A stretch of DNA of 64,000 nt from Anaeramoeba ignava BMAN. Its lineage: Eukaryota > Protista > Anaeramoebae. A program made the position numbers and the translations under genes. Under the pieces are notes generated by a model that saw nothing but the letters and a program-made list of their open reading frames with translations, ran no database searches and was not told the DNA's origin. Every line of letters begins with the position of its first letter. Position 1 is the stretch's first letter. Below are positions 1,009 through 58,882 of this stretch, in pieces. Location: the NCBI GenBank assembly GCA_028826165.1, contig JAPDFW010000076.1:248001-312000 (forward strand), written 5' to 3'.

Positions 1009-1139
1009 TTTAATTAACTTTTTTTTTTGCCTGCTTTTTAAAATTAAAACAAAAAAAAAATGAGAAAAATTAAAAAAAAAATTTTTTTTCTTTTTTTTCT
1101 TTCTTTTACACGTGTTCTTTAAATTCTTAATTACATTTA

Positions 1140-3215: not shown

Positions 3216-3516
3216 TGAATATTTAAAAATTGTAATTAGAGCAATGAAAAATTTATACAAATTTTGAATAACAAAAGCAAGCCAACGATTGTTAAATATT
3301 ATTAAAATTAAATTTTTATCTTTATTAAAATATTTCAAATATTCTTTCTAATTTTATTACATTATTGGGAATTATTTTATATGATTTTAAATAAAGAAAG
3401 ATTGATAAAATATATAAATTAGAATTAATTCCAAAATTAAATATTAAATTAAAATAATTTCATTTTTTTTATTTTTTTATTTTTCATTTTTTTCCTTTTT
3501 TTTTAAATAAAAAAAA

Positions 3517-3785
3517 ACAATTTAAATTAAGTAAATATTTTTAAAAATTAATAATAAAAATAATAAATTAAACATAAATTATTTATTAAAAACATTTAAA
3601 TAATCAAAATATTTATAAATTATTAATTAAAATATAATTTATTTAAATAAAAAAACACAATTTAAATTAAGTAAATATTTTTAAAAAAAATTAATAATAA
3701 AAATATCAAATTAAACATAAATTATTTATTAAAAACATTTAAATAATCAAAATAATAAATTGATTATTAATTAAAATCTTTTTAT
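3517..3785 (+). repeat. ~140-bp tandem repeat immediately upstream of the BTB ATG (2 units; ~5 units in copy 2 at ~35430-36140)
   Basis: TTTAAATTAAGTAAATATTT occurs at 3521 and 3661. Confidence 0.75.
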
Positions 3786-3805
3786 TTGAAAAAAAAAGAA
3801 AAGAA

Positions 3806-6800
3806 ATGAATTTAAATCAAAATCAAAATCAAAATCAAAATCAAAATCAAAATCAAAATCAAAATCAAAATCAAAATCAAAATCAAAATCAAAATCAAAA
3901 TCAAAGAATTCAATCCAAAATTAAAAAATTCAATAAATTCTTAATAAATCAAGCAAATAAACAAATTGGTTTAATGTTTGGAAATAAAAAAACTTCAGAT
4001 TTTCAAATTTATTGTGGAAAAGATAAAATTTCAATTCCTTGTCATAAATCAATTTTAGAAGCTCGTTCAAAATATTTTATGATAAACAGAAGAGAAAACA
4101 AATTTAATTCAATTTATTTTAATAATTTTAGTTCTGAAATTGTTAAACCAATTATTAAATTTTTTTATAATGGAAAATTTAAATTTGATAAACAAAAATT
4201 TGATGAATATTTTAAATTTGCAAATCAAATTAAATTAAAAGAAATTAAAATCAAAATTGAACTTGAAATTCAATCAATTTTTAATATTGAAAATATTTTG
4301 GAAATTTATTTTAAATCTCAACAAATTAATTCAAAAAATCTTTCTCAAAATTGTGAAAAATTTATTTTCCAAAATATTCAATTTATTATTTCAAATCCAA
4401 ATTTTGATAAATATTTAAATCAAAATCAAAATCAAATTTACAATTTTATTGGATTAATTTCTTTAAATCAAAATTTTCCAAATCAACTTCAAATTATTCA
4501 ACAAATTGAACAAAAATGGAATCAAAATAATCAAAAAAAATTGATAAAATTAATTAAATTTGAAATAGATCAAAAAGAAAATCAAATTGAAAATCAAAAT
4601 GAAAATCAAAATGAAAATTCTTTTTCAACTTTATTAAATCAAATTTTACAAACAAAATCAATTAATCAATTTCAAATTCAACAAATCAAAAATAAATCAA
4701 TTTCTCAATTTCAAAATAAAATTGTTTTATTAAATTCAAATATTCAAGAATTTGATGAAAAAGAATTTCAACCTTTACAACGGAATCAGATTCTTCTTGA
4801 TTTCCAAATAAATGATAAACAAAAAGAAAACGAAAAATTAGAAAAAATTAAAAAAGAAATTCAAGAAATTCAAAAAGAATATAAAAAATGGAAAAAAGAA
4901 ATTAAAGAAAAATTTCAAAAATTAATTCAAAATGAAAATGAAAAAATGAAAAAAGAAGATTTACAACAATTTAATATAAGAATTATTAATTTGAAAGATT
5001 TATTTGAACAAAATAGAAAACAAGATTTAGAAAATTTTCAAAAAGAAATTGAAGAAATTCAAAATAAATTCAAAGAAATAAAGAATATAAATTTGGAAGA
5101 AATTGATAAAAAATATCAAGAATTAATAAATTTTCCCAAATTAAAAATAGAAAAAGATTTAAAATTATTTGAAGAAACAATTCAACAATTTAAGAATGAA
5201 TTTGAAAAAAGAAAAGAAGAAATTGAAGAATTTAAACAACTTATTCAACAAAATAAAAATGAAAATGAAAATGAAAATTTAGAAAAAATTGATAAAATAA
5301 TTCAAGAAATAAAAAATAAAATTAAATTCCAAAAAAATAAATATTTAGAAATAATTGAAAAGAAAATCCAAGAAATTGAAATTAAAAATGAAAATTTAAA
5401 TGAAATTGAAAAAATAATTCAAGAAATTAAAAATGAAATTGAAAAAATAAAAAATGAATTTTATTCAAAAATTGATCCACAAATCAAAAATATTCAAAAT
5501 CAAAATCAAAATCAAAATCAAAAATCAAAAATTAAAATTCTTCAATCAATAGAAAAAACAACAAATTTTTTACAAGATCTTTCAAATAAAATTCAACAAA
5601 ATAATCAAAGTAAATCAAACACAAAACAAAAAATAAAATTAAATTGAATTAAATGATTTTAATCAATTTATTATATATTTAATAATATTTCATTTTTAAA
5701 TTACAAAAAAAAAACAAAAGAATTAATTGAAATTGATGTTCCTTTTATTATTGAATGTATGAATAATTTTCCAACAAATGAAATTATTCAAGAAAATGGA
5801 TGTTTTATTTTACAAAAATTTGCAAAAGAAAATGAAAGTAAATATTTATTTTTTAATTTGGAAAATAATTTCATTTATTTTAAAACTTGATTTATTTTTT
5901 GAAATTAAATTTAAATAATATTAAAAATAATAATGAAATTGGAAATTCAAAAGGAATTGAACCTATTATTAAATCAATGAATAATTTCCCAAATAATGAA
6001 AATATTCAAAAATATGGATGTTTAGCTTTAGGGATTATTGCTTTTAATAATGGTAAATAATAAAATAAATCAATCAAAAAATAAATAAATCAAAAAATCC
6101 AAATATTATTTTCCATTTTTCTTTATTTTTTTAAATTTAAAAAATTAAAAAATTAAACACAAAAAAATCAATAGAAAATAATTTCCAAAAAAAAAACAAA
6201 AATAAATTTACAAAATAATAATTATTAATTATTAATTAAAATCCAAAAATAAATAATTAATTTTAAATTTATTTTCCAAAAATTTAATTAAAATAAAAAA
6301 AATAGAAAACCAAATTGAAATTAATAATTTAAAAGGAATTGAACCTATTATTAAATCAATGAATAATTTCCCAAATAATGAAGATATTCAAAAATATGGA
6401 TGTAGAGCTTTAGGGATTATTGCTAATAATAATGGTAAATAATAAAATAAATCAATCAAAAAAATAAATAAATCAAAAAATCCAAATATTATTTTTCTAT
6501 TTTTCTTTATTTTTTTAAATTAAAAAAATTAAACACAAAAAAATCAATAGAAAATAATTCCCAAAAAAAAAACAAAAATAAATTTACAAAATAATAATTA
6601 TTAATTATTAATTAAAATCCAAAAATAAATAATTAATTTTAAATTTATTTTCCAAAAATTAAAATAAAATAAAAAAATAGAAAACAAAATTGAAATTAAT
6701 AATTTAAAAGGAATTGAACCTATTATTAAATCAATGAATAATTTCCCAAATAATGAAAATATTCAAAAATATGGATGTAGAGCTTTAGGGAATATTGCTA

Positions 6801-9800
6801 ATAATAATAATGGTAAATAATAAAATAAATCAATCAAAAAAATAAATTAAAAAATCCAAATATTATTTTCTATTTTTATTTATATATATTTTAAATTTAA
6901 AAAATTAAAAAATTAAACACAAAAAAATCAATAGAAAATAATTTCCAAAAAAAATTAAATTAAATTAAATTAAATTAATTTTAAATTTATTTTCCAAAAA
7001 TTTAATTAAAATAAAATAAAAAAATAGAAAACAAAATTGAAATTAATAATTTAAAAGGAATTGAACCTATTATTAAATCAATGAATAATTTCCCAAATAA
7101 TGAAAATATTCAATATTATGGATGTTTAGCTTTAGGGAATATTGCTAATAATAAAAGTAAATAATAAAATAAATCAATCCAAAAAAATAAATAAATCAAA
7201 AAATCCAAATATTATTTTCCATTTTTCTTTATTTTTAAATTTAAAAATTAAAAAATTAAACACAAAAAAATCAATAGAAAATAATTTCCAAAACCAAATT
7301 TAATAAATAATAAATATTAATTATTAAATATTAATTAAAATCCAAAATAAAAAAATAAATAATTTTAAATTAAATTAATTTTAAATTTATTTTCCAAAAA
7401 TTTAATTAAAATAAAATAAAAAAATAGAAAACCGAATTGAAATTAATAATTTAAAAGGAATTAAACCTATTATTAAATCAATGAATAATTTCCCAAATAA
7501 TGAAAATATTCAAAAATATGGATGTTTCGCTTTAGGGAATATTGCTAATAATAATGGTAAATAATAAAATAAATCAATCCAAAAAATAAATAAATCAAAA
7601 AATCCAAATATTATTTTCTATTTTTCTTTATTTTTTTAAATTTAAAAAATTAAAAAATTAAACATAAAAAAAAATCAATAGAAAATAATTTCCAAAAAAA
7701 ATTAAATCAAACAAAATAATAATTATTAATTATTAATTATTAATTAAATTAAATTAAATTAATTTTAAATTTATTTTCCAAAAATTTAATTAAAATAAAA
7801 AAATAGAAAACAAAATTAAAATTAATAATTTAAAAGGAATTGAACCTATTATTAAATCAATGAATAATTTCCCAAATAATCAAAATATTCAATATTATGG
7901 ATGTTTCGCTTTAGGGAGTATTGCTGCTTATAATAATGGTAAATAATAAAATAAATCAATCCAAAAATAAATAAATCAAAAAATCCAAATATTATTTTCT
8001 ATTTTTCTTTATATTTTTTAAATTTAAAAAATTAAAAAATTAAACATAAAAAAATCAATAGAAAATAATTTCCAAAAAAAATTAAATCAAACAAAATAAT
8101 AATTATTAATTATTAATTATTAATTAAATTAAATTAAATTAATTTTAAATTTATTTTCCAAAAATTTAATTAAAATAAAAAAATAGAAAACAAAATTAAA
8201 ATTAATAATTTAAAAGGAATTGAACCTATTATTAAATCAATGAATAATTTCCCAAATAATCAAAATATTCAATATTATGGATGTTTCGCTTTAGGGAGTA
8301 TTGCTGCTTATAATAATGGTAAATAATAAAATAAATCAATCCAAAAAATAAATAAATCAAAAAATCCAAATATTATTTTCTATTTTTCTTTATATTTTTA
8401 AATTTAAAAAATTAAAAAATTAAACATAAAAAAATCAATAGAAAATAATTTCCAAAAAAAATTAAATCAAACAAAATATTAATTATTAATTATTAATTAT
8501 TAATTAAAATCCAAAAAAATTGAATTAAAATAAATTATTTAATTTTAAATTTATTTTCCAAAAATTTAATTAAAATAAAAAAATAGAAAACCGAATTGAA
8601 ATTAATAATTTAAAAGGAATTGAACCTATTATTAAATCAATGAATAATTTCCCAAATAATCAAAATATTCAAAATCAAGGATGTAGAGCTTTAGGGAATA
8701 TTGCTAATAATAAGGTAAATTAAAAAAAATAAAAAATCAAAAATCCAAATATTATTTTCTATTTTTCTTTATTTTTTTTAAATTTAAAAAATTAAAAAAT
8801 TAAACACAAAAAAATCAATAGAAAATAATTTCCAAAAAATATAAATTTAATAAATTTACAAAATAATAAATATTAATTATTAATAATTAAAATCCAAAAA
8901 AAATGAATCAAATTAAATAATTAATTTTAAATTAATTTTCCAAAAATTTAATTAAAATAAAATAAAAAAATAGAAAACCGAATTGAAATTAATAATTTAA
9001 AAGGAATTGAACCTATTATTAAATCAATGAATAATTTCCCAAATAATCAAAATATTCAAGAAAATGGATGTTTAGCTTTAGGGAATATTGCTTATAATAA
9101 TGGTAAATAATAAAATAAATCAATCAAAAAAAATAAATCAAAAAAATCAAAAATCCAAATATTATTTTCCATTTTTCTTTATTTTTTTTAAATTTAAAAA
9201 ATTAAAAAATTAAACAATTAAACACAAAAAAATCAATAGAAAATAATTTCCAAAAAATATAAATTTAATAAATTTACAAAATAATAAATATTAATTATTA
9301 ATAATTAAAATCCAAAAAAAATGAATCAAATTAAATAATTAATTTTAAATTTATTTTCCAAAAAATTAATTAAAATAAAAAAATAGAAAACCGAATTGAA
9401 ATTAATAATTTAAAAGGAATTGAACCTATTATTAAATCAATGAATAATTTCCCAAATAATCAAAATATTCAAAAAAATGGATGTTTCGCTTTAGGGAATA
9501 TTGCTTATAATAATGGTAAATAATAAAATAAATCAATCAAAAAAAAATAAATAAATCAAAAAATCCAAATATTATTTTCTATTTTTCTTTATTTTTTTTA
9601 AATTTAAAAAATTAAAAAATTAAACAATTAAACACAAAAAAATCAATAGAAAATAATTTCCAAAAAATATAAATTTAATAAATTTACAAAATAATAAATA
9701 TTAATTATTAATAATTAAAATCCAAAAAAAATGAATCAAATTAAATAATTAATTTTAAATTAATTTTCCAAAAATTTAATTAAAATAAAAAATAGAAAAC

Positions 9801-10133
9801 CTAATTGAAATTAATAATTTAAAAGGAATTGAACCTATTATTAAATCAATGTATAATTTCCCAAATAATCAAAATATTCAAGAAAATGGATGTGAAGCTT
9901 TAAGGAATATTGCTTTTAATAATAAAGGTAAATAATAAAATAAATCAATCAAAAAATAAATGGAAAAATGGATATTTATTAAATTAAATTAAATTAAATT
10001 AAAATCAAAAATAGAAAATAGAAGAGAAATAAAAAGATTGAAAGGAATCCAACTTATAAAAATAGCAATTAAAAAATTCCCAAATAATCAAGATATTCAA
10101 TATTATGGAAAATTGGCTTTAAAAAATTTATAA
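3806..10133 (+). CDS. BTB/BACK - coiled coil - Armadillo-repeat array protein, copy 1 (spliced)
   Basis: Exon 1 3806-5609 ((NQ)n; BTB motif SDFQIYCGKDKISIPCHKSILEARSKYF; BACK-like helices; long E/K/Q coiled coil). N-cap exon 5721-5837. ARM exons 5954-6052, 6306-6434, 6681-6812, 7028-7156, 7428-7556, 7807-7938, 8187-8318, 8587-8714, 8974-9102, 9387-9515, 9796-9927. Terminal exon 10015-10133 (ENRREIKRLKGIQLIKIAIKKFPNNQDIQYYGKLALKNL*). All introns are GTAAAT...AG and phase 1 except after 8714 (that exon is 128 nt). Confidence 0.88.
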
Positions 10134-20100: not shown

Positions 20101-23100
20101 GCAGAGAACCAGAACATCAATTTGGTCAAATTGACAAAGTATTCTGTGATGCAGAAAATACACGAACAAAACTCAGCCCAAGTTGTTTACACATCCGAAA
20201 CAAGTTTTAATTATTACGCAAATTTGAATCTTTTTCTTCTTTCTTTTGCCGATCTTAGTGCTAACGTAATTAACAGCCAGGAAAAAGTGCAATTTGAATT
20301 ATCCGAAAAGGAAAAAACAGAAAATCCTCTTTCAAACCAATATTTCACTGATAATGTTGGCAAATGGTTTATTCTCCGCGAAAGAGGATCCACAGAAAAC
20401 GCATTCAAAGCAATAAACATGTTTGAATCAAGCGCATTTGTTGAAGCGATTATTCCCGAATTTTCAAAAGCTTTGTACCATTCTGAGCAGAATTATCGCA
20501 ATTACTCAATATTGGTTTTTGGGATGGCAAATTCCAAAAACATTTCGCCAATTATTCACGAGCTTATTGAAGGCAAAGAGTATGCCAACTATCTCAAATC
20601 CAAATCTTCCCAGAAATCACGAGCAATTGGGGATCTTGCATTAGCAATTCGGATCATTTCGCAGAACAGAAATATCCAAATCGAAATCCGTAAAAAATCA
20701 ACAATGGTCATGAATTTCTTGCAATTTATAAAAATGAGCGAGCAAAGTCTCATTGTAAAACCCTCGCGAAAAAGCAACAGAAAAATGAGCTATTTGCACT
20801 CTGTATCGCTTACCTCAGACACTGGACTATACCATCCATATTCACACTCAATAAATCATTGCCTCATTTTGGCGAACATCAATGATTACATCTCAAAGGA
20901 ATCACGAATCCACACACAAGGATTGCTCAAACACAACTTCTATGTAACCCAAATTGACGATTTTTGGCCGAGAAAAGAGAGATTGGAATGCTTCAACTTC
21001 ATCAAAATATGGTCTGGTCATGGGAGCGAGCAAGCAAAGCATTTTGCCCAAATTCAAGAAACGGAAATCGAGAATTTGGTCTCGCGATTAAAGAACCAAA
21101 ACGAGCAACAAATAACGGAAAAGAAATCAAGATACATGGTGGATCATCTCAGATTATCTGCTCATCTTGCAATGACAAATATAGCAAAATTGGGTCCGTT
21201 ATTTTTGTCGGTTGAAGAAATGGATCAGCAAAGCCAACAATGGTTTATTGATTCCGAACGCAAAGGATACAAAATGCTGAAATGGCTTCTTTCGTTCCAT
21301 TTTTCGGATATTCTTGAGAAATATGTCGATTTTGCTTATCACAGCAAAAAGGAAGATGCTGATCTTTTTTGGATCTCAATATGCGACCAGTTTATTGATT
21401 ATAAACCAAAAATGAGCGAGTTTTCATCAACTGGAATTTTGAGAGATGTTCTTTTTTTCTCAATGGAATACCAAGAAAACCAACTTGAAAGAATTAGGTT
21501 TCCCGAATCAAAGAAAAAGTTTTTTCTGAAGGCAAAAACTTACAAACGAGAAAAATTTGGTTCGCATTATCTTCTTAATTCTCCTCAAATCAGACAACAA
21601 AATAACGAAAATACCGAACATTTTCATCACGAAGATTCTATTGACCCGAAAAAACAAGAAATCATCAACCAGGATTATGAGGAATTCATGAGCACAGTCA
21701 CAAAAAGCTTCGGTGTTATCACTTTGTTGGCGCTTCTGAATCTCTTCAATTCAAACCAGAAGGTTCGCTCCAAAACATTCAAAATGATGTCAAGAACGAT
21801 TCCTGCTATTGTGAGTCGAGAAGCAGCCAAACGCAGCATTCCTGCCAAGAAAATTGAGGATCTCCAAAACAAACTCCATGAATTGCGGAGAAATTTATTT
21901 GGAACAAATTCCATTTCGCTCAGGAAATGGGCTTTAGAAGTAAACTCTTTGGTTGCCAAAACTTGTTCCTCATTTTCAGAACAAATTCTGAACGAAGTTT
22001 TCGGCAGAATACAAGATCAAAAAAGAACAGGAATTTCTTTGAATAGCGAAAGAAGAGAGTGTCTTTATCAAATCCTTGTTGAATGGATTAAAAACGTTTC
22101 GATTGTTGATAAATTCATTGCGATCGGAACAGGTTCAAAGCAAATCCAAACGGAAATCAAGACCAAAAGAATACTCAATTCCATTTTTGATATGACGATG
22201 AACGAACTGGAAGAAACCATGAATTTTTCGAAGTCTCTTTCTGACATATGGGTCTATTTAGTAACGCCAAAAGAGAATCTTGACGAAGACGCAGACACAC
22301 AACCAAAAACACCAGTCAGAACATTAACATTAGCGCTCACTTCTGCTCAACAAACAAAAATCAATGAGAATATGATCTATGTTCTCCAATTTTTAATCAA
22401 ACAGCATAATAAAGGCGAGAAATATGGATCTTTAAGCCGCAAAATTGCTGTGTTTTTATTCCAGAATTTCCCGCAAGAATCATTGATTCCGCTTGTTTAT
22501 CGACTTACTTTTACTTCATGGAATCGCATGAACGGAATCAAATCAAAACTTCTTTATCAGAATATTCCGAAAGATTTTGCATCAAGTTTTGAACACAAAT
22601 CAAAAGAGCAATTTACAAAGGAATTCTTGGACATCCAAGAGGAATTCCGCAACCAATTAGCGCAGCACAAAACAAACCAATCAGCAATGCTTTTTTCAGA
22701 CACCTGCTTAAGAATTCTCAATGATTTCTTGATCGAAGACATTTCGCCAATACTCCCTTATATTCACATCTTGATCCACTATTCTATACTTCGTATTGGT
22801 TGCGCAATTTATGAAGATTCAAAAGAAAAAAAACAACTCCATCTTGAGATACTGATAAGTATTCTCCATTCTCTTTTGAATATCGCCATTCAATCTCGCG
22901 ATATCGAGTCTTCTATTTGGATCCAAAATATGATCGAAATCACAAAAAGTCTCACAATTAAAGGATATTCTTTGGTTTGGAAAGGTCTTCGTGCTTCAAA
23001 AGCAAATATCTCATCAGAAACAAAGGAAAAAAAACCTCAAAGCAAACTTACTCTGAATCTTCTTTACAACAAATTCAACATGAGAAAAAGTGGATTCTTT

Positions 23101-25869
23101 TTCCGCAATAAAAAACGTTTGAGCAACACAGAAATGGATTTCTCAAACATCAAACAAACACAAAACATGCCGCTAAACATGAGAAATGTCGAGGATAAGC
23201 AATTACAAGAAATTCAATTGATTGAAAAATTCTCTTCAATTTCCCTTTTCCAAAAAGACATGATTATAAAGAATTTCTTTGGCAAGAAAGACATCGAGAA
23301 AAAAGAAGACGAAGTAATAGACGAAAAAGAAAAAGAGGAAGAGAAACGGTATTTGGAAGAGAAACAGAGAGTAGAGGAACTAATGCTGATCCAGCCATGG
23401 ATCACCAACACAATCGCTATTTCTGATTTTGTTTCACAACTTTCGACATCAATCAAAAAAATTGTTCCGAAAATTGATAAATCTCTCGGAAAAGAATCAT
23501 TGAAATGGGCGCTGTTTTGTGTCGATCCTTTATATTCTCTAATCAGCTCTGAAATTTATTCGGCATCGCTTTCTCCTCTTAATGAAATTATTATCCAAAA
23601 GTTGATCCAAAGAACACTTTTTGGGTTAAATTCAATGATTTCCTTTTCGTACAAATTGAAAACATCGCGAAGCATGAGATTCCATCTTTCAAAAAACACA
23701 CAAGTTAAATCAACCCGGAGAATTGATCTTGTTCGCATGGGTTTTGGTGATGAAGACGAAGACAACAATGACGACGATAACAATGATAACGATGAAAATC
23801 AAGTGGAACAAATTCAACCACATATCTATCTTTCTTCCTTGATAAGGCTTCTATATTCCGTCACAAAAAAACTCTCAGAAAAAAGCAAACTGAATTCTTA
23901 TCCAGAGATCTTCTGGACTTCAGTTTCGCTCCTCCGTTGCACTCAGCTCATGAATATTTACCAGCAAAGCATCCGTATTATCGAACTATTCATTTATAAT
24001 TCCATTTTATTCAAAAATTTGGAAATCAACAACGATTCAAAAGAAAAAAAACAAAAGCATTCAAGCTCTTTTGGATTGGAATCCTTTAAATCTTTCTCAG
24101 AAAACTGGCGGAAATCATTTGAAGGAATTCAGCCCTTGCTGATTCCCGCATTTTCTTTTGGCTGCACGCGCAAGAAGTTCCTTGGATTAATAACCTCGCT
24201 TAATAGTTTCAAATCACACTATTTAGTCGACCATTCCGAATCTCGTTATCTGATTGGAATTCTTGGTCTTTTGCCGTGGTTCCAATTCATTTTCTTCCAA
24301 AAACCACTTGCAAACACAAAAGTGAATGAAGACACTGGAAGATCAAGAGCAAAACAATTGAGCGAATGGATTGGCAAAGAGCTTCCAAAATTAGTCCCGA
24401 ATTCCCAAAATCTTGCCGGTTTATTTTCTGAGTTTTCCCAACCAAAACAAGAAGAAAACTTCTCGCAATTCGCATCCAATGTTTGCTCAGAATTAACAAA
24501 GTTATTTTTCCCCAAATTTGCCTCTGAAGCGGCTAAGATGATTGCCATTATTTCTGGAAGTGGACCGTCTCCATTTTTTGATGCTTCACTTGATATTGCT
24601 CGATATTTTCTTGAGCAAGAAAACTCTCATTTAGTTTATCATCATTTTTCCGAAATTGTGAAAATTGCTTTGGAAAATTTGAATTCAATCGAACATCAAA
24701 AATCCATTCTTTCTCTTTTGGAAACTTCTGCTCGTGTTTCTTCATCTTTGGATCCTGATCATTTGCCTGATCAACTTGACAATCAAAATCAAAATCATCT
24801 TGAAATGCGATTTTCTTTAAAGGATGCTGAAGATTCGCTTACAAATGTTGTTATGGAAATGAATTTTCAAATGAAAGCAAAACTCCAAAACAAACACAAA
24901 ATTTTTCCTTTAACAAAAAGAATTTTTGAAGAACCTGTTATTTTTTCTCAAAATATCGAAGTTGATAATTCCGAAGAAAAATTAGAAAGAGTTTTTTCAT
25001 TTAAAGAAATAAAAAATCAAGTTCCAAAACCAATACAAAACAAAGAAGAAAAAGAAAAAGAAAATCAAATTGAAAATCCAAAAGAAATTGAAAATCAAAT
25101 TGAAAATCAAATTGAAAAAGAAATTGAAAAAGAAATTAATCTTGATTCTGAAGATGATGAAGATGATGAAAAAAAAGAGCCTTTGAATCAAGAAAATCCA
25201 AATGATTCAAATATTCAAAAAATAACAACAACTCCAAAAAGTATCCAAAGTTCAGAAGAAGAAAACCAAGAAAAAATAGCAAATAATCCAAAAAGCGAAA
25301 CAAAAACAGATGAAAATGAAGATATTGATATTGATATTGATATTGAATTCAAAACTGAACCCAATTCACTTGTTCAAAAACAACAGGAATTCAATGAAAG
25401 ACAAAAATCAACATTGAATTTTAAGCAAATGATTTCAATTAAACAAGATTCTCAAGTTTTAAATCGGGAAGAAATTGAAAAGCAATTCAAAGAAATGATC
25501 CAAAATGAAAATTTAAGAGATCAATTTGGAATTTTTATTGAGAATAATCTTTCAGATGAAGAATCAATTATTTTTCTTTTTTATGAAATTGTCTTGAATT
25601 ATTTATCTTCTCCAAAAGGAAGTAAAGAATCTCTTTCATTTGCTCAATCGATTATTAAAAGATTTATTAATGAAGATTCTTTTGAAAGAATTCCAATCAA
25701 ACTTCAAACAATGAAACAAATTTTCGAAAAATTTCAATTTAATGAAAATTCTCATCCTGATTCTACTTTATTTTCAGATGCAATTGAAGAAATTACTCCC
25801 ATTTTATTACAATCTTTTAAATTATATCTTCAATCAAAAAATCAAAATCAAAATCAAAATCAAAATTAA
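17132..25869 (+). CDS. Furry/Tao3/Mor2-like large HEAT/ARM scaffold with C-terminal RGS domain (~2800 aa, 4 exons)
   Basis: Exons 17132-17709, 17781-17976, 18047-18521, 18596-25869 with consistent phases (2,0,1). Furry-like C-terminal motifs PEIFWTSVSLL and FEGIQPLL. RGS-like end FKEMIQNENLRDQFGIFIENNLSDEE..FLF...AQSIIKRFI...IPI...LFSDAIEEI..IL.QSFKLYL. Confidence 0.75.
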
Positions 25870-28827: not shown

Positions 28828-31800
28828 TTATAAATTTTTTAAAGCCAATTTTCCATATTTTTGAATATTTTGATTATTTGGGAATTTTTTAATTGCTGTT
28901 TTTATAAGTTGAATTCCTTTCAATCTTTTTATTTCTCTTCTATTTTCTATTTTTGATTTTAATTTAATTTAATTTAATAAATATTCATTTTTCCATTTAT
29001 TTTTGGATTGATTTATTTTATTATTTACTTTTATTATTAAAAGCAATATTCCCTAAAGCGAAACATCCATAATCTTGAATATCTTGATTATTTGGGAAAT
29101 TATTCATTGATTTAATAATAGGTTCAATTCCTTTTAAATTATTAATTTCAATTTGGTTTTCTATTTTTTTATTTTAATTAAATTTTTGGAAAATAAATTT
29201 AAAATTAATTTAATTTAATTTAATTTAATTTAATTATTTGGATTTTAATTAATAATTAATAATTAATATTTATTATTTTGTAAATTTATTTTAATTTTTG
29301 TTTTGGAAATTATTTTCTATTGATTTTTTTGTGTTTAATTTTTTAATTTTTTAAATTTAAAATATATAAAGAAAAATGGAAAATAATATTTGGATTTTTT
29401 GATTTATTTATTTTTTTGGATTGATTTATTTTATTATTTACCATTATTATTAGCAGCAATATTCCCTAAAGCGAAACATCCATAATATTGAATATCTTCA
29501 TTATTTGGGAAATTATTCATTGATTTAATAATAGGTTCAATTCCATTTAAATTATTAATTTCAATTAGGTTTTCTATTTTTTTATTTTAATTAAATTTTT
29601 GGAAAATAAATTTAAAATTAATTTAATTTAATTTAATTATTAATTATTTGGATTTTAATTAATAATTAATATTTAATAATTAATATTTTGTAAATTTATT
29701 TTAATTTTTGTTTTGGAAATTATTTTCTATTGATTTTTTTGTGTTTAATTTTTTAATTTTTTAAATTTAAAATATATATAAATAAAAATAGAAAATAATA
29801 TTTGGATTTTTTAATTGATTTATTTTTTGATTGATTTATTTTATTATTTACTTTTATTAATAGCAATAGCCCATAAAGCGAAACATCCATTTTCTTGAAT
29901 ATTTTGATTATTTGGGAAATTATTCATTGATTTAATAATAGGTTCAATTCCTTTTAAATTATTAATTTCAATTTGGTTTTCTATTTTTTTTATTTTATTT
30001 TAATTAAATTTTTGGAAAATAAATTTAAAATTAATTAATAATTAATAATTATTAATTATTTATTTTTGGATTTTAATTAATAATTAATAATTATTATTTA
30101 TTATTTTGTAAATTTATTTTTGTTTTTTTTTTTGAAATTATTTTCTATTGATTTTTTTGTGTTTAATTTTTTAATTTTTTAAATTTAAAAAAAATAAATA
30201 AAAATGGAAAATAATATTTGGATTTTTTGATTTATTTATTTTTTTGGATTGATTTATTTTATTATTTACTTTTATTACTAGCAATATTCCCTAAAGCTCT
30301 ACATCCTTGATTTTGAATATTTTCATTATTTGGGAAATTATTCATTGATTTAATAATAGGTTCAATTCCTTTTAAATTATTAATTTCAATTTTGTTTTCT
30401 TTTTTTTTATTTTAATTAAATTTTTGGAAAATAAATTTAAAATTAATTAATTTAATTTAATTTTTAATTATTTTGGATTTTAATTAATAATTAATATTTA
30501 TTATTTAATATTTATTATTTTGTAAATTTGGTTTATTTTGGAAATTATTTTCTATTGATTTTTTTATGTTTAATTTTTTAATTTTTTAAATTTAAAAAAA
30601 ATAAATAAAAATGGAAAATAATATTTGGATTTTTTGATTTATTTTTTTGATTGATTTATTTTATTATTTACCATTATTAACAGCAATATTCCCTAAAGCT
30701 AAACATCCATAATATTGAATATTTTCATTATTTGGGAAATTATTCATTGATTTAATAATAGGTTCAATTCCTTTTAAATTATTAATTTCAATTTTGTTTT
30801 CTATTTTTTTATTTTAATTAAATTTTTGGAAAATAAATTTAAAATTAATTTAATTTAATTTAATTTTTAATTATTTTGGATTTTAATTAATATTTAATAT
30901 TTAATAATTATTATTTATTAAATTTGGTTTATTTTGGAAATTATTTTCTATTGATTTTTTTATGTTTAATTTTTTAATTTTTTAAATTTAAAAAAAATAA
31001 ATAAAAATGGAAAATAATATTTGGATTTTTTGATTTATTTTTTTGGATTGATTTATTTTATTATTTACCATTATTATTAGCAGCAATATTCCCTAAAGCG
31101 AAACATCCATATTTTTGAATATTTTGATTATTTGGGAAATTATTCATTGATTTAATAATAGGTTCAATTCCTTTTAAATTATTAATTTCAATTTGGTTTT
31201 CTATTTTTTTATTTTAATTAAATTTTTGGAAAATAAATTTAAAATTAATTTAATTTAATTTAATTTTTAATTATTTTGGATTTTAATTAATATTTAATAT
31301 TTAATAATTATTATTTATTAAATTTATTTTAATTTTTTTTTTGTGTTTAATTTTTTAATTTTTTAAATTTAAAAATAAAGAAAAATGGAAAATAATATTT
31401 GGATTTTTTGATTTATTTATTTTTTGGATTGATTTATTTTATTATTTACCATTATTATTAGCAGCAATATTCCCTAAAGCGAAACATCCATATTCTTGAA
31501 TATTTTGATTATTTGGGAAATTATTCATTGATTTAATAATAGGTTCAATTCCTTTTAAATTATTAATTTCAATTTGGTTTTCTATTTTTGATTTTAATTA
31601 AATTTTTGGAAAATAAATTTAAAATTATTTAATTTAATTTGATTTGATTTTTTTGGATTTTAATTAATAAATAATAATTAATTAATTATTATTTAGTAAA
31701 TTTATTTAGTTTTGTTTTGGAAATTATTTTCTATTGATTTTTTTGTGTTTAATTTTTTAATTTTTTAAATTTAAAAAAATAAAGAAAAATGGAAAATAAT

Positions 31801-34800
31801 ATTTGGATTTTTTGATTGATTTATTTTTTTGGATTGATTTATTTTATTATTTACCATTATTATTAGCAGCAATATTCCCTAAAGCTCTACATCCATAATC
31901 TTGAATATCTTGATTATTTGGGAAATTATTCATTGATTTAATAATAGGTTCAATTCCTTTTAAATTATTAATTTCAATTTGGTTTTCTATTTTTTTATTT
32001 TAATTAAATTTTTGGAAAATAAATTTAAAATTAATTTAATTTAATTTAATTTTTAATTATTTTGGATTTTAATTAATAATTAATATTTATTAAATTTAAT
32101 TTTTTGGAAATTATTTTCTATTGATTTTTTTATGTTTAATTTTTTAATTTTTTAAATTTAAAAAAATAAAGAAAAATGGAAAATAATATTTGGATTTTTT
32201 GATTTATTTTTTTGATTGATTTATTTTATTATTTACCATTATTAACAGCAATATTCCCTAAAGCTCTACATCCATATTTTTGAATATTTTGATTATTTGG
32301 GAAATTATTCATTGATTTAATAATAGGTTCAATTCCTTTTAAATTATTAATTTCAATTTTGTTTTCTATTTTTTTATTTTAATTAAATTTTTGGAAAATA
32401 AATTTAAAATTAATTTAATTTAATTTAATTATTAATTATTTTGGATTTTAATTAATAATTAATATTATTTATTATTTTGTAAATTTATTTAGTTTTGTTT
32501 TGGAAATTATTTTCTATTGATTTTTTTGTGTTTAATTTTTTAATTTTTTAAATTTAAAAAAAATAAAGAAAAATAGAAAATAATATTTGGATTTTTTGAT
32601 TTATTTATTTTTTTGATTGATTTATTTTATTATTTACCATTATTATTAGCAATATTCCCTAAAGCTCTACATCCTCGATATTGAATATCTTGATTATTTG
32701 GGAAATTATTCATTGATTTAATAATAGGTTCAATTCCTTTTAAATTATTAATTTCAATTTTGTTTTCTATTTTTTTATTTTAATTAAATTTTTGGAAAAT
32801 AAATTTAAAATTAATTAATTTAATTTAATTTAATTTTTTTTGGATTAGAATTTTGGAATTAAAAAATATGGAAATAAATGTTTTCTGTTTTTTTTCTTGT
32901 ATTTTTTTACCTGAATTAAGTGCAATATTAATTAAAATTGAAATGGAATTTTCTTGAATAATTTGGTTATTTGGATAATTATTAATTGTATTAATAATTG
33001 TTTTAATTCCATTTAATTTAGAAATTTCTTTTCCTTTTATTTTTCGGTTTTGAATTTCTTCATCTTTTTGTTTTTGTTTTTGTTTTTGGAAAGAAGAAAA
33101 GAAATTGAAATTTCCAAATAATTAATTTAATTTTCTTTCTTTTTGATTTTTGATTTTGTTAAAAAAATAATTTAATTTACGTTTTAATCCTCCTGAAAAT
33201 ATTAATAAAGCTTCAGATGATTTAATTTGAATTTCTTGATTATTTGGAAAATTATTCATTGATTTAATAAGAGGTTCAATTCCATTTAAATTCTTTATTT
33301 CAATTTGATTATCTTTTAATTTCCAATTTCATCATTATTTTTTATTTTAATTAATTTCAAAAAATAAATCAAGTTTTAAAATAAATGAAATTATTTTCCA
33401 AATTAAAAAATAAATATTTACTTTCATTTTCTTTTGTAAATTTTTGTAAAATAAAACATCCATTTTCTTGAATAATTTCATTTGTTGGAAAATTATTCAT
33501 ACATTCAATAATAAAAGGAACATCAATTTCAATTAATTCTTTTGTTTTTTTTTTTGTAATTTAAAAATGAAATATTATTAAATATATAATAAATTGATTA
33601 AAATCATTCAATTCAATTTAATTTCATTTTTTGTTTTGTGTTTGATTTACTTTGATCATTTTGTTGAATTTTATTTGAAAGATCTTGTAAAAAATTTGTT
33701 GTTTTTTCTATTGATTGAAGAATTTTAATTTTTGATTTTTGATTTTGATTTTGATTTTGAATATTTTTGATTTTTTGATTAATTTTTGAATAAAATTCAT
33801 TTTTTATTTTTTCAATTTCATTTTTAATTTCTTGAATTATTTTTTCAATTTCATTTAAATTTTCATTTTTAATTTCAATTTCTTGGATTTTCTTTTCAAT
33901 TATTTCTAAATATTTATTTTTTTGGAATTTAATTTTATTTTTTATTTCTTCAATTATTTTATCAATTTTTTCTAAATTTTCATTTTCATTTTCATTTTTG
34001 TTTTGTTGAATAAATTGTTTAAATTCTTCAATTTCTTCTTTTCTTTTTTCAATTTCATTCTTAAATTTTTGAATTGTTTCTTCAAATGATTTTAAATCTT
34101 TTTCTGTTTTTAATTTGGGAAAATTTATTAATTCTTGATATTTTTTATCAATTTCTTCCAAATTTATATTCTTTATTTCTTTGAATTTATTTTGAATTTC
34201 TTCAATTTGTTTTTGAAAATTTTCTAAATCTTGTTTTCTATTTTGTTCAAATAAATCTTTCAAATTAATAATTATTTTATTAAATTCTTGTAAATCTTCT
34301 TTTTTCATTTTTTCATTTTCATTTTGAATTAATTTTTGAAATTTTTCTTTAATTTCTTTTTTCCATTTTTTATATTCTTCTTGAATTTCTTGAATTTCTT
34401 TTTTAATTTTTTCTAATTTTTCTTTTTCTTTTGATTGTTCTTTGTTGATAATAAAGTTGATTAATTTGAAATTCTGATATTTGATTTTCTTCTCTAAATT
34501 CTTGAATATTTGAATTTAATAAAACAATTTTATTTTGAAATTGAGAAATTGATTTATTTTTGATTTGTTGAATTTGAAATTGATTAATTGATTTTGTTTG
34601 TGAAATTTGATTTAATAAAGTTGAAAAGAATTTTCAATTTCCATTTTTTCATTTTCATTTTCATTTTGATCTATTTCAAAATTAATTAATTTTATCAATT
34701 TTTTTTGATTATTTTGATTCCATTTTTGTTCAATTTGTTGAATAATTTGAAGTTGATTTGGAATAGTTTGATTTAAAGAAATTAATCCAATAAAATTGTA

Positions 34801-35397
34801 AATTTGATTTTGATTTTGATTTAAATATTTATCAAAATTTGGATTTGAAATGATAAATTGAATATTTTGGAAAATAAATTTTTCACAATTTTGAGAAAGA
34901 TTTTTTGAATTAATTTGTTGAGATTTAAAATAAATTTCTAAAATATTTTCAATATTAAAAATTGATTGAATTTCAAGTTCAATTTTGATTTTAATTTCTT
35001 TTAATTTAATTTGATTTGCAAATTTAAAATATTCATCAAATTTTTGTTTATCAAATTCAAATTTTCCATTATAAAAAAATTTAATAATTGGTTTAACAAT
35101 TTCAGAACTAAAATTATTAAAATAAATTGAATTAAATTTATTTTCTCTTCTATTTATCATAAAATATTTTGAACGAGCTTCTAAAATTGATTTATGGCAA
35201 GGAATTGAAATTTTATCTTTTCCACAATAAATTTGAAAATCTGAAGTTTTTTTATTTCCAAACATTAAACCAATTTGTTTATTTGCTTGATTTATTAAGA
35301 ATTTATTGAATTTTTTAATTTTGGATTGAATTCTTTGATTTTGATTTTGATTTTGATTTTGATTTTGATTTTGATTTTGATTTTGATTTGAATTCAT
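28828..35397 (-). CDS. BTB/BACK - coiled coil - Armadillo-repeat array protein, copy 2 (spliced; two 1-nt frameshifts in exon 1)
   Basis: Exon 1 35397-33651 (indels near 34625 and 34455). N-cap 33538-33422. Divergent ARM exons 33312-33181 and 33063-32911. Array exons 32766-32638, 32365-32237, 31986-31855, 31581-31450, 31200-31069, 30800-30672, 30398-30270, 29980-29852, 29573-29442, 29160-29029. Terminal exon 28946-28828. All introns are phase 1 and all internal exon lengths are multiples of 3. Confidence 0.85.
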
Positions 35398-36439
35398 TTC
35401 TTTTCTTTTTTTTTCAAATAAAAAGATTTTAATTAATAATCAATTTATTATTTTGATTATTTAAATGTTTTTAATAAATAATTTATGTTTAATTTGATAT
35501 TTTTATTATTAATTTTTTGTTTATTTTATTAAATAAAAAAAAGGAAAAATAATATTTTTGCTTTTTGTTTTTGATTAAATAAATTATATTTTAATTAATA
35601 ATTTATAAATATTTTGATTATTTAAATGTTTTTAATAAATAATTTATGTTTAATTAGATATTTTTATATTTAATTTTTTTAAAAATATTTACTTAATTTA
35701 AATTGTTTTTGATTAAATAAATTATATTTTAATTAATAATTTATAAATATTTTGATTTATTTAAATGTTTTTAATAAATAATTTATGTTTAATTTGATAT
35801 TTTTATTATTAATTTTTAAAAATATTTACTTAATTTAAATTGTTTTTATTTAAATAAATTATATTTTAATTAATAATTTATAAATATTTTGATTACTGAA
35901 ATGTTTTTCATATTATTTTTATGTTTAATTTATTATTTTTATTATTAATTTTTGTTTATTTTATTAAATAAAAAAGGAAAAAAATATTTTGCTTTTTGTT
36001 TTTAATTAAATAAATTATATTTTTAATAATTAATTTATAAATATTTTGATTATTTAAATGTTTTTAATAAATAATTTATGTTTAATTTATTATTTTTATT
36101 ATTAATTTTTTTTAAAAAATATTTACTTAATTTAAATTGTTTTTTTATTTAAAAAAAAAGGAAAAAAATGAAAAATAAAAAAATAAAAAAAATGAAATTA
36201 TTTTAATTTAATATTTAATTTTGGAATTAATTCTAATTTATATATTTTATCAATCTTTCTTTATTTAAAATCATATAAAATAATTCCCAATAATGTAATA
36301 AAATTAGAAAAAAAAATTTGAAATATTTTAATAAAGATAAAAATTGAATTTTAATAATATTTAACAATCGTTGGCTTGGTTTTTTTGTTATTCAAAATTT
36401 ATATAAATTTTTTCATTGCTCTAATTACAATTTTTAAAT

Positions 36440-37730
36440 ATTCATTCTTTATATTTTTATGTTAAATATTGAAATAATAAAATATTTAAATCTAAAACAT
36501 TAAATTATTATTTTAATAATAAAATTAAATATTAAATTATATTTTTAAAATGATTTATAAATTAAATATTAAATTAAATCTATTCTTATTTTTTATATTT
36601 ATTTGTTAAATATTGAAATAATAAAATATTTAAATCTAAAACATTAAATTATTATTTTAATAATAAAATTAAATATTAAATTATATTTTTAAATTGATTT
36701 ATAAATTAAATATTAAATTAAACTTATTCTTATTTTTATATTTATATGTTTAATATTTAAATAATAAAATATTTAAAATCTAAAACATTAAATTATTATT
36801 TTAATAATAAAATTAAATTAGAAATTATATTTTTTAAATTGATTTATAAATTAAATACTAAATTAAATCTATTCTTATTTTTATATTTTCTTTGTTAAAT
36901 ATTTAAATAATAAAATATTTAAATTTAAAACATTAAATTATTATTTTAATAATAAAATTAAATATTAAATTATATTTTTAAATTGATTTATAAATTAAAT
37001 ATTAAATTAAATCTATTCTTATTTTTATATTTATATGTTAAATATTTAAATAATAAAATATTTAAATTTAAAACATTAAATTATTATTTTAATAATAAAA
37101 TTAATTTAGAAATTATATTTTTAAAATGATTTATAAATTAAATATTAAATTAAATCTATTCTTATTTTTATATTTTTATGTTAAATATTTAAATAATAAA
37201 ATATTTAAATCTAAAACATTAAATTATTATTTTAATAATAAAAATTAAATTCAGAAATTATATTTTTAAAATGATTTATAAATTAAATATTAAATTAAAT
37301 CTATTCTTATTTTTATATTTATATGTTAAATATGTAAATAAGAAAATATTTAAATTTAAAACATTAAATTATTATTTTAATAATAAAACATTAAATTATA
37401 TTTAAAATGATTTATAAATTAAATATTAAATTAAATCTATTCTTATTTTTATATTTTTATATAAAAATTTAAATAATAAAATATATTTTTAAAATTAAAT
37501 TATTATTTTAATAATTAAATTTAAATTATATTTTTAAAATGATTTATAAATTAAATATTAAATTAAATCTATTCTTATTTTTTATATTTATATGTTAAAT
37601 ATTTAAATAATAAAATATTTAAATTTAAAACATTAAATTATTATTTTAATAATAGAATTAAATTAGAAATTATATTTTTAAATTGATTTATAAATTAAAT
37701 ATTAAATTAAATCTATTCTCATTTTTTATA
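36440..37730 (-). repeat. ~143-bp satellite (~9 units), reverse complement of 1140-3215
   Basis: AAATATTTAAATCTAAAACATTAAA units. Confidence 0.9.
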
Positions 37731-37840
37731 TAAATTTAATTAAAAAAATGTGGAATAAAATTAATTAAAAAACTTAAAATGATTTCTTCTTTTTTATTAA
37801 AAAAAAAAGAAAAAAAATACTTTCTTTCAAATCATTGCAA

Positions 37841-40800
37841 TTAATTCACTTTCTTTTTCTCTCTAGGTTCACGAATCAAAGAAAGAGAATATATAGCCTT
37901 ACTATCTTTAGAATTAGAAATGGAATCCATAATAAAATTAAAAATTTCAGGAACTTTTTCAAAAAAATAAGGCATTTGTTGATAAGTTTGAATATCTGAA
38001 ATAACGGTTGAAATTTTTCTTCTCTTTTCAAAATTGATAAGCTCTTTGCTGCCATTTTTTGAAGAAATAAAGTCTCTATTTCCATTTCCAATGAAAACCA
38101 AATCAGTAAAATAAACACCCAAATAAGGAATACAAGGTGGATTCCTTGATTTTAAAGTTTCTCGATAGAACTTAGAATTATCATCAGTCGCCAAATATCG
38201 TTGCATCTCTTGGTACAATTCTATCTGCCGCGGTGGTACGAGTTCCCATGTTTTCTTTAAGCGATGAACCGCAGAATTTGTTAATCCCGCAATTACTTCT
38301 TGAATTGAATTAAAATTATTTAGTTCATTGCATTTCTGCGAAAATTTGATAAAATAAGAAATCATTGCAGCGCGTGATTTGGGCTTCTCAGGCGCAACAA
38401 TTTCCCCTGCAATCCACACTCCAATTTTATTGAACATTTCAGTCATTTTTATGATGTTTGGTGCGCGAGTCTCCTTATCTGGCTTTAGCCATCCTTCTCC
38501 AAGACACTCTTTTGGTTGGATTGCTTTGTATAGATCAAATTCTATCAACGCAACCTGTCTTGCTAACTCCAAGGGATCGATATCTGTTGTCTTCAAATTC
38601 GTTGTTGTTTTGGGTAAAATTGGTTTTGGAAAAATTATGCTTTTTGAATATTCTACTTTTTTTTTTTGGTTTTCTTGCTTTTTTTTTAATAAATCTCCGA
38701 GTTGTTCTGATGGTTTTTCTAATCCTGGAATTTGTTTAGTATTTTCAATAAAACTTTGTACTTCTTCGATAATAGATGGATCATTTATAAAGTCATAAAA
38801 GTGAGATTTAATCCAATGGTTTAAAACATTAAAAACTCTATATTTTTTTATCCGATTTTAATTTTAATTTTAATTATAATTTTATAAATGAAATTTAATT
38901 TTAATTTTATAAATGAATTTTAATTTTATAAATGAATTTTAATTTTAATTTTATAAATGAATTTTAATTTTAATTTTAATTTTAATTTTAATTTTATAAA
39001 TGAATTTTAATTTAAATTTTAATTTTAATTATAATTTTATAAATTAATTTTAATTATAATTTTATAAATTTTAATTTTTAATTTTAATTTTATAAATGAA
39101 TTTTAATTTTAATAATTTTAATTTTAATTTTAATTTTAATATTAATTTTAATTTTAATTTTAATTTTAATATTAATTTTAATTTTAATTTTAATTTTAAT
39201 TTTAATTTTTATCTTAATTTTATAAATGAATTTTAATTTTAATTTTTATTTTAATTTTAATTTTATTTTATAAATGAATTTTATAAATGAATTTTAATTT
39301 TAATTTTATAAATGAATTTTAATTTTTTGGAAAAATACTTTAATTTTGTTAAACTTTGATTTTTTTTAAAAATTTCTAAATTTGCTCCTTGACAATCTTC
39401 AGGTGGTTCTTCAATACATCTTTCTTTCAATAAATTTAGAAGTTCAGAAGGGGAAGTAAATGATCTATATGTTAAAAGGAAAGTTTGCAAAAATTCTTGA
39501 TCTAAAATTCATTCAAATTAAAATTAAAATAAAATGAAATAATATAAAGTTCATTTAAACTCAAATAAAAATGTTCATTTTTGCTTTAAAATATTTTATT
39601 TACCAGAACTTCTTGGTTTTGTAAGAAATTTTACAAGCATTTTAACTATTGCTGCTTGAATTTGATATTTTTTCTTGTTTTTATCGTAAAATAATAAATA
39701 ATCATCTTCATCATCTTCATCAGAAACAATTTTGTCTTGTTCTGCTAATTCATCTTTTAGAATTAAACCTATTCATTATTTTAATTTTAATTTTTTATCC
39801 GATTTTAATTTTAATTTTATTTTTATTTTTAATTTTAATTTTAATTTTAATTTTAATTTTAATTTTATAAATGAATTTTAATTTATAATTAAATTGTAAA
39901 TAAAAATATAAACCTGATTCTGAAATAGATTCACGAAGTCGAGGAGTTGAACATTTTTGTGCACAAAATTTATCTTGATAAATTGCTTTTGGTTCAAGTT
40001 TTAAAGAAATTTCCAAAAATTCATCAAAATTTGATTTTGGTTGTAATGAATCAAGATAAGTATGAATTGCTTGAACTAATCTAAATTTATAAATCTTTTC
40101 AATGATTTTGATTTAATAAAAAAAACATCAATGATTTTTTTAATTCTATTTTTAATAAATACTGATAATTGACAAAGTTGCATAAATTCAACAATTTTTG
40201 AAATTGCTGATAATTTTTTTAAATTGATTAATTTTTTATTTTTTTCATGAAATGTTTCATGTTCAGATTCAATTAAAGAAATATCATAAAGTATTAAATC
40301 TAAAAGAAATAAAACGGTGAAAAAAATTTTTTTGTTAAAATTGAATTAAAATCAATAAATATTTTTAATTTAAACCTAAAAATGGAATGCAAGGAAAATT
40401 AATTTCACTTAAAATTTGTCTATATTTCCTATAATTATTTGCTGGATTCACAACAGTTGTTAATTTATCAAATTGTCTTTTTTGTTCAACAGAAACATGC
40501 TTTAATTATTTTTAATTTATTATTTAATATTTTTTGTTTTTCCTTTTGAAATTAAAATATTTCATACTTCCCAAGAATTTCTAAGTCTAAATATTGAATC
40601 AGATTGTAAACCAGACATAATTGCAAATAGTGCGTAAAAATTATTTAATTCAAAGCATCTCTTTTTTTTTGAAATGTTTTATTTAAATTGATTTTAAATT
40701 GATATAAAATATTTGATTTAAATTGATTTAAAATTGATTTAAAATTGATTATAAAAATGATTTTAAATATTTGATTTAAAATTGATTTAAAATTTATTAT

Positions 40801-49100: not shown

Positions 49101-49500
49101 GAAAAAGGATCATGAACAGAACCAAAAAGATTATGAATTCATCAAAAAAACAACAAAAGAAACTGAGCAATTAAAAAAAGAATTTACAAAATTCAAATCA
49201 CAAGCAACTATTTTCCAGCAAAGTAAATGTGCAGAATGTCAGGATATTCTTGATAATCCAAGCGTGCATTTTCTTTGTGGTCATTCTTTCCATCTTGGTT
49301 GTTTGACTTTATCTGATGAGGAATGTCCCTTTTGTTCTACTCAATATAAGGATTTATCAAAATATAAGGAAAGTGTTCAACATCAAAGTGGTGAAGAATT
49401 AGAAGAAAAACTTTCTCAACAAGATGAAGGATTTGAAATTGTTTCTCAATATTTTGGCAAAAGTTTATTTGAGAATTTTACTCCAAGAAGAAGAAAATAA
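43111..49500 (+). CDS. VPS11: Vacuolar protein sorting 11 (HOPS/CORVET core); middle exons not recoverable
   Basis: MSYYRRFDFF start. Exons 43111-43231, 43388-43626, 45184-45334, 45409-45620, [gap], from 47147 (KRDYEAAIKQYVETIGIGVEPSYVIQKFL), ~47464, ~47742, and ~48485-49500 with C-terminal RING FQQSKCAECQDILDNPSVHFLCGHSFHLGC...CPFC. Confidence 0.9.
43630..45175 (+). repeat. Intronic 12-bp repeat (ATAAATAATTTT)n in VPS11
   Basis: Directly visible, virtually pure A/T. Confidence 0.9.
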
Positions 49501-58705: not shown

Positions 58706-58882
58706 ATTTTCAAATTTTTTTTTTTTTTGATTTTTTCTCATTCCACTTTTTTTTCTCATTCCACTTTTTGTTTTAATTCTTTTTTCTTTTTCTTTTTCTT
58801 TTTTTCTTTTCTTCAAATCATAATAAACTTTTTTTTTTAAAATTCATTTTTTAAAATTCATTTTTTTTCATTAATAATAATA

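Follow-up and report, generated by a model that had tools for sequence, protein, structure and literature searches.

Recombining armadillo-repeat exons in a large Anaeramoeba ignava gene family, a candidate Cullin-3 adaptor repertoire

How can two genes remain closely alike over most of their length and yet carry repeat arrays that have no unit in common? The question is raised by a stretch of 64,000 nucleotides (nt) from Anaeramoeba ignava BMAN (contig JAPDFW010000076.1, positions 248,001 to 312,000; here called the window), in which two genes in opposite orientation encode a BTB domain, a coiled coil and an array of armadillo (ARM) repeats. An earlier note, made from the sequence alone, had proposed that short-tract recombination or gene conversion reassorts a shared pool of alleles between the arrays much faster than the rest of the gene diverges. 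We find that the two genes are sister copies by inverted duplication within a large A. ignava family of armadillo-array proteins, many of which are joined to a BTB domain with 3-box-like helices. The family is very large and has one exon per repeat; its alleles are mosaic, its variation keeps to one helical face, and the most likely reading of its sequences is that the proteins form a repertoire of Cullin-3 adaptors on which diversifying selection acts.

Whole-genome pattern counts were made on the BMAN assembly (42,843,398 bases, 147 contigs), which was generated from Nanopore R9.4/9.5 data and polished with Racon, Nanopolish and Pilon (PMC11550330). Exon statistics refer, unless the window pair is named, to 145 array-type exons taken from 20 further family loci (L numbers) and the window, the genome total being at least 631. 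The ALxN motif serves as the anchor for numbering positions within a repeat.

Two arrays that draw on one pool of alleles

The array of the minus-strand gene (copy 2) has ten ARM repeats, each a single exon of 129 or 132 nt bounded by AG and GT and in phase 1; homologous introns of 249-289 nt separate them. The variable codons are 2, 25, 26, 29, 30, 33, 36, 37 and 40, whose residues are given below for each unit.

29029..32766, minus strand: copy 2 array, ten ARM exons
32766-32638, minus strand: array exon 1, K/QD/YR/R/GN/N
32365-32237, minus strand: array exon 2, K/QN/KY/R/GN/V
31986-31855, minus strand: array exon 3, Q/QD/DY/R/GN/A
31581-31450, minus strand: array exon 4, Q/QN/EY/F/GN/A
31200-31069, minus strand: array exon 5, Q/QN/KY/F/GN/A
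30800-30672, minus strand: array exon 6, K/EN/YY/L/GN/V
30398-30270, minus strand: array exon 7, K/EN/NQ/R/GN/S
29980-29852, minus strand: array exon 8, Q/QN/EN/F/WA/I
29573-29442, minus strand: array exon 9, L/ED/YY/F/GN/A
29160-29029, minus strand: array exon 10, Q/QD/DY/F/GN/F
6306..9927, plus strand: copy 1 array, ten ARM exons

These strings agree exactly, and in the same order, with those read in the earlier note. Copy 1, the inverted sister gene at 3806-10132, has ten array exons and one hybrid exon. As had been observed, no copy-2 exon equals a copy-1 exon, the nearest cross-copy pair, A3/B6 (A for units of copy 1, B for those of copy 2), differing by 2 nt. The recurrence of codon alleles in both copies was likewise borne out, with AGA/TTA/TTC at codon 33, AAA/AAT/GAA/TAT at codon 29, AAT/CAA/TAT at codon 30 and AAA/CAA/CTA at codon 2; at codon 40, four of seven alleles are private to one copy. 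Within codons 1-36 of the 20 exons of the pair, variation is exclusively non-synonymous, each residue being encoded by a single codon.

To call the second repertoire "entirely different" was an overstatement, because same-position exons differ by 6.4 nt compared with 8.2 nt for all cross-copy pairs (permutation p=0.0036), and the arrays therefore retain some positional memory. If a ten-unit array had been duplicated and had then diverged normally, matching introns would be 1-2% apart. In alignments with positions 29323-29377 masked, the closest cross-copy intron pair differs by 2.4% and same-position introns by 6.7% on average, and pairs within a copy come as close as 0.8%. Strict positional orthology of the units was rejected, since no cross-copy intron pair is as similar as the two genes are elsewhere (1-2% divergence); the position-orthologous pairs with tree-like variation that the note had set against reassortment are not what the arrays contain. 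Copy structure is absent in exons (Fst-like 0.015, p=0.30) and present in introns (0.11, p=0.005).

Recombination among units, genes and contigs

The pairwise homoplasy index (PHI), which the note had recommended, was significant on nucleotides (p=0.0004) and, on exons with their flanks, gave p=0.0003-0.001 at short windows and 0.17 at 100 nt. We discount the nucleotide PHI because sites within a codon are linked, and rely instead on codon-block permutation and simulation. When each codon is treated as one block, incompatibility increases the farther apart two codons lie (Fisher p=1.1e-4 over nine arrays; p=0.002 for all exons). As the null model, 40 data sets were simulated without recombination on the maximum-likelihood tree, with site rates fitted. 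In the window pair, incompatibility of far pairs reaches 0.88 of linkage equilibrium, compared with a simulated 0.54+/-0.11 (maximum 0.83), and in three other arrays it reaches 0.87, 0.87 and 0.79, above all 40 simulations (0.30, 0.35 and 0.36). Haplotypes of several nucleotides recombine freely: those that join codons 29-30 with codons 36-39 occur in 34 of 56 combinations, where a homoplasy-free tree permits 14, and the four-codon haplotype NNLS appears in five genes, accompanied by a number of different 29-30 alleles. Linkage extends over 1-2 codons and has largely disappeared beyond 7, which bounds tract length loosely; two-parent mosaics fit A3, B4 and B6 with 0 mismatches, an illustration only, given the many combinations tried.

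Codon bias was rejected as the origin of the common alleles, several of which are rare codons (GGG, TCG, CTG, TTC), and this points to identity by descent. Gst is 0.84-0.85 at framework codons 1, 5 and 6, which are fixed within genes, versus 0.07-0.27 at groove codons, and thus the arrays are homogenised internally, whereas groove alleles are retained and exchanged between genes. The proposal that recombination or gene conversion reassorts a common pool is supported, with the amendment that this pool is family-wide and not confined to the two copies.

The rest of the gene, against which the note had measured the speed of reassortment, contains the following features.

33651..35397, minus strand: copy 2 exon 1, with QN-rich leader, BTB and 3-box-like helices, coiled coil and phase-1 donor at its end (open reading frames, alignment to copy 1)
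34624..34627, minus strand: one-base deletion in copy 2 exon 1 (T4; T5 in copy 1) that breaks the frame (open reading frames, alignment)
34433..34495, minus strand: converted tract in the copy 2 coiled coil (family alignment)
33422..33538, minus strand: N-cap ARM-like exon 1, 117 nt, common to both copies (alignment)
33181..33312, minus strand: N-cap ARM exon 2, 132 nt, lacking in copy 1 and present in many family members (alignment)
32911..33063, minus strand: N-cap ARM exon 3, 153 nt, lacking in copy 1 (alignment)
28828..28946, minus strand: C-cap exon with stop codon (alignment)
3806..5609, plus strand: copy 1 exon 1, with BTB, 3-box-like helices and coiled coil, frame intact
5953..6052, plus strand: copy 1 hybrid exon, the acceptor region of N-cap exon 2 fused to the 3' part of an array exon

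Beyond the arrays, divergence between the copies is 1.0-3.6%, with three exceptions that the earlier note had not picked up: two cap exons, a tract of ~60 nt in the coiled coil and the one-base deletion in copy 2. The description of the caps as near-identical fits the first N-cap exon (1.0% mismatch) and the C-cap (3.6%), but not the two N-cap exons at 33312-33181 and 33063-32911; the hybrid junction of copy 1 removes two cap exons and is predicted to be in frame. Similarly, the coiled coil is near-identical outside one tract (1.4-2.2% mismatch), but an 80-column window at copy-1 position 4773 is only 52% identical. At this tract the family falls into two types, and each copy has a different one. 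The copy 2 type occurs also in L001, L004, L005, L007, L012 and L015, and the copy 1 type (4754-4821) in L002, L009 and L014; L003 is mosaic inside the tract. Conversion is thus not confined to the arrays but affects the whole gene and crosses between contigs. That the array is reassorted faster than the rest of the gene is not established as a contrast in rate, since exon 1 is itself mosaic, with a tract converted from other loci. The 1-2% divergence of exon 1 may reflect recent homogenisation, and the larger divergence of the arrays is attributable to the ~600 donors available to them, to unequal exchange inside the array and to what appears to be selection for keeping groove alleles distinct. 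Tandem repeats of 143 nt upstream of both paralogues (1115-3850 and 35400-37800) belong to the inverted duplication, and this flank (500 nt tested) has diverged by 17% between copies, more than the coding exon.

The base deleted in copy 2 at 34624-34627 is kept by copy 1 and 16 other family members. In copy 1, unit 7 (8587-8714) is 128 nt long, one A short in a homopolymer. Because one-base slips affect seven array exons of the analysed set, and those located sit in A-runs, assembly error is the likelier cause; the frameshifts in both copies are probably uncorrected Nanopore homopolymer errors, although the copy 2 deletion is possibly real. The arrays of L015 (2300-5600) and L007 carry several one-base slips, and L015 also an in-frame TGA at codon 33; both may be pseudogenes or poorly polished regions.

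An assembly with such slips invites the suspicion that mosaicism was manufactured during Pilon polishing, if short reads mis-mapped among ~600 similar exons mixed true alleles. The Nanopore R9.4 data, the Racon/Nanopolish/Pilon procedure and the homopolymer slips that persist in arrays are all in keeping with this. However, mis-mapping should pull units toward a consensus, and yet the 145 exons encode 140 distinct peptides; gene-diagnostic framework codons remain fixed within genes; linkage decays with distance; and the 60-nt tract of exon 1 repeats the pattern. We consider such an artefact extremely improbable.

Variation along one helical face

Exon sequences were searched one by one, and their profile matches the LRRK2 ARM domain, Vac8 and importin-alpha. 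The protein that was folded is another family member, P0121 (KAJ5075045.1), a database gene model; its residues 525-835 are modelled as an armadillo solenoid with three helices per repeat (predicted local distance difference test, pLDDT, 97.7), and in Foldseek its nearest structures are designed armadillo proteins, beta-catenin and Vac8. By profile and model, each array exon is read as encoding one armadillo repeat.

Entropy over the 145 repeats is highest at codons 29, 30, 33, 36 and 40 and has a period of 100-102 degrees along helix 3 (p=0.0007), so that variation follows one helical face. Asn37, the residue that binds the peptide backbone in armadillo proteins, is kept in 129 of 145 repeats. 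Early designed-armadillo libraries reportedly randomised positions 4, 26, 29, 30, 33, 36, 40 and 41, a set to which the variable positions here come close. In designed armadillo proteins, helix-3 residues 29, 30 and 33 make the specificity pocket (PMC11228518). Diversity in the window pair is 0.273 at groove codons, 0.010 in the framework and 0.058-0.065 in introns; groove codons are thus ~4.5 times as diverse as introns, which relaxed constraint alone cannot explain. Extra alleles within arrays are non-synonymous in 240 and synonymous in 3 cases at groove codons, versus 85 and 22 in the framework (p=9e-10).

Some features of this variation might suggest a programmed or somatic process, such as alternative splicing of symmetric exons, targeted recombination in clonal culture, or mutagenesis like that of diversity-generating retroelements (DGRs). 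In codons 36 and 40 the third position is constant and the first two vary; a skipped exon would leave the frame intact, every exon being phase 1-1; and somatic shuffling has been hypothesised for analogous genes in Ectocarpus (PMC3341825). Nonetheless, alleles are common across contigs as old haplotypes, and neither a recombination signal nor a dedicated enzyme came to light; a programmed origin is very unlikely. Its DGR-type form, adenine mutagenesis, was rejected on the finding that only 22 of the 1885 third-position adenines in the framework are altered, with no search made for a template repeat or reverse transcriptase.

Family size, domain partners and a possible cullin link

Family members were counted, as had been suggested, with a 20-nt framework pattern, which has 631 matches in the genome (control 0); 19 BTB exons are at least 86% identical. 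Arrays in the family run to more than 20 units. Repeats of this general type are widespread, with 4393 representatives. A length-limited database search turned up no full-length model of the close subfamily; A. ignava models of the family are automatically named "Protein aardvark". Loci L008, L010 and L013 have BTB exons 92-94% identical to those of the window and no ARM array in the retrieved stretch, and L006, L011 and L012 have only diverged cap-type repeats. P0121 is a RING-kinase-SH3 protein with the same ARM array, including several near-identical repeats; the array has moved between different signalling domains.

In copy-1 exon 1, the BTB domain is recognised by PF00651 above cut-off (E=2.4e-10), and its best match in the PDB is SPOP, aligned through the 3-box region to residue 327, a distant match (E ~1e-6). 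Pfam reported BTB only on exon 1, with no BACK and no NACHT/NB-ARC-type STAND NTPase domain, and the other exons are ARM. Cullin genes are present in the genome.

The same recombining, selected library could have another output, in which the BTB domain merely oligomerises the array, or the array recognises self or allorecognition proteins, or else a non-peptide ligand such as nucleic acid. Such a reading must reckon with the 3-box-length similarity to a known Cullin-3 adaptor, with the fact that RING is likewise a ubiquitin-ligase module, and with the conservation of Asn37, which in armadillo proteins contacts the peptide backbone. It draws on the arrays joined to kinase, SH3, RING and RCC1 domains, on the distance of the SPOP match and lack of a BACK match, and on fungal repeat receptors of the same evolution that serve allorecognition (PMC4986451). 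We regard it as rather unlikely, though the likeliest of the alternatives.

A proposed explanation

The Cullin-3 adaptor reading can be set out as follows. One repeat corresponds to one symmetric exon, with a homogenised framework and a few hypervariable helix-3 positions on one face, and through conversion of short tracts and unequal exchange the alleles at these positions pass from unit to unit and from gene to gene, also across contigs. The variable positions would line a concave peptide-binding groove, selection would favour new groove combinations, and the BTB/3-box module would recruit Cullin-3, so that each gene would supply a substrate receptor through which any protein bound by its array is ubiquitinated. 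As a whole, the family would resemble a library of protein binders that diversifies itself. Fast-changing foreign proteins (symbiont, bacterial or viral) would be the likeliest targets, and diversification would be evolution of the germline type, for which a programmed somatic mechanism is unnecessary. That the groove binds peptides, that selection is diversifying, that Cullin-3 is recruited and that the targets are foreign we infer jointly, and hold the combination to be probable, with considerable room for doubt. More speculatively, and with a rather low expectation of being right, the family may be an equivalent in nature of designed armadillo binders: a repeat would read about two residues of an extended peptide by a learnable code, and family-wide conversion would keep rewriting such codes on Cullin-3 adaptors. 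The result would be combinatorial targeted degradation of symbiont or viral proteins, possibly variable within a clonal population.

Several results weigh against this reading. Related ARM arrays also occur on RING-kinase-SH3 and RCC1-BTB proteins, and therefore BTB is not the sole output. Intron-only PHI was not significant (p=0.12-0.22), nor was the codon-level distance test on the window pair alone (p=0.086 and p=0.43). Each copy, as assembled, has a frameshift. The groove codon set was picked partly after the variation had been seen, and tree-based omega (IQ-TREE) is unstable, at 1.0-2.3 or at its bound for the surface and 0.35-0.63 for the framework. Because recombination makes omega unstable and synonymous change is reduced by A+T saturation, positive selection on groove sites is likely but not proven.

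Some of these points would also be expected from neutral concerted evolution of A+T-rich tandem exons under relaxed surface constraint, with many copies as decaying pseudogenes. Frameshifts in both copies and in seven array exons overall, the in-frame stop in L015, the identical adjacent units 5 and 6 of copy 1 (A5/A6), the near-identical repeats of P0121 and the unstable omega estimates are all compatible with it. It is opposed by the excess of groove over intron diversity, by the 240:3 versus 85:22 allele counts and by the single helical face that variation tracks, and we judge it very improbable.

Other genes in the window

Peptidase T (M20) is encoded at 11322-12650 (minus strand), with best matches of ~55% identity that are mostly from Heimdallarchaeota and other Asgard archaea; lateral transfer or retention of an archaeal-type gene is possible, judging from these matches. 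A 2442-codon open frame at 18541-25866 (plus strand) has a MOR2-PAG1_C (Furry-like) domain and lies in a stretch of 28-36% G+C, far above the window average. Ordinary neighbours encode a RasGEF (37844-38857, minus strand), a Vps11-like protein (48478-49497, plus strand) and a DUF1749 hydrolase (58841-59833, plus strand).

Comparison with known systems

Repeat-shuffling recognition families built from LRR, TPR, WD40 and ankyrin repeats are already known; a literature search of incomplete coverage found no paper on one built from armadillo repeats, nor on this family in Anaeramoeba. Anaeramoeba keeps bacterial symbionts in a symbiosome, and the family is therefore a testable candidate for intracellular non-self recognition in an anaerobic lineage. 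Evolution appears to vary the same groove positions as protein engineers do, which makes hundreds of natural modules available for tests of peptide specificity.

Among BTB-ARM proteins, ARMC5, plant ARIA/ABAP1 and those annotated "Protein aardvark" have a similar domain content, although in A. ignava that name is a transfer by similarity. Proteins of the ARMC5 and ARIA/ABAP1 type are encoded by single-copy genes, their repeats are divergent and their domains are differently ordered. The Cullin-3 adaptors SPOP, MATH-BTB and KLHL also join a conserved BTB and, as apparently here, 3-box-like helices to a variable substrate domain in an expanded family, whereas here a modular ARM array, diversified through recombination at the level of the repeat, takes the place of a single MATH or Kelch domain. 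Thomas reportedly described expanded nematode MATH-BTB and F-box families in 2006. Designed armadillo repeat proteins (PMC11228518; PDB 5MFM, 6S9O, 4RV1) resemble the present arrays in their near-identical three-helix repeats, constant framework and specificity residues (in the present arrays putative) 29, 30 and 33 of helix 3, but they are synthetic, whereas the natural repeats have 43-44 residues and are of the LRRK2-ARM-like type.

The closest parallels in mode of evolution are two sets of receptors. The Ectocarpus ROCO-LRR and NB-ARC-TPR receptors (PMC3341825) likewise encode each repeat in an exon of its own, shuffle exons and form a large, fast-turnover family; their repeat domain is under diversifying selection, which is likely here too. 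They differ in their repeats (LRR/TPR, not armadillo), in their partner domains (ROCO GTPase or NB-ARC, not BTB with 3-box-like helices) and in belonging to an unrelated lineage, and exchange here also takes place inside exons, below the scale of the repeat. Podospora HNWD genes and other fungal NLRs with highly conserved WD, ANK or TPR repeats (PMC4986451) share repeats more than 85% identical, concerted evolution within and between genes, and hypervariable sites on the binding surface, here a putative one; in the present family the repeats are armadillo and intron-separated, and no NACHT/NB-ARC or cell-death effector domain was found. By analogy, the A. ignava family would work like the Ectocarpus and fungal repeat receptors while, with its armadillo repeats and no NTPase domain, being a member of neither.

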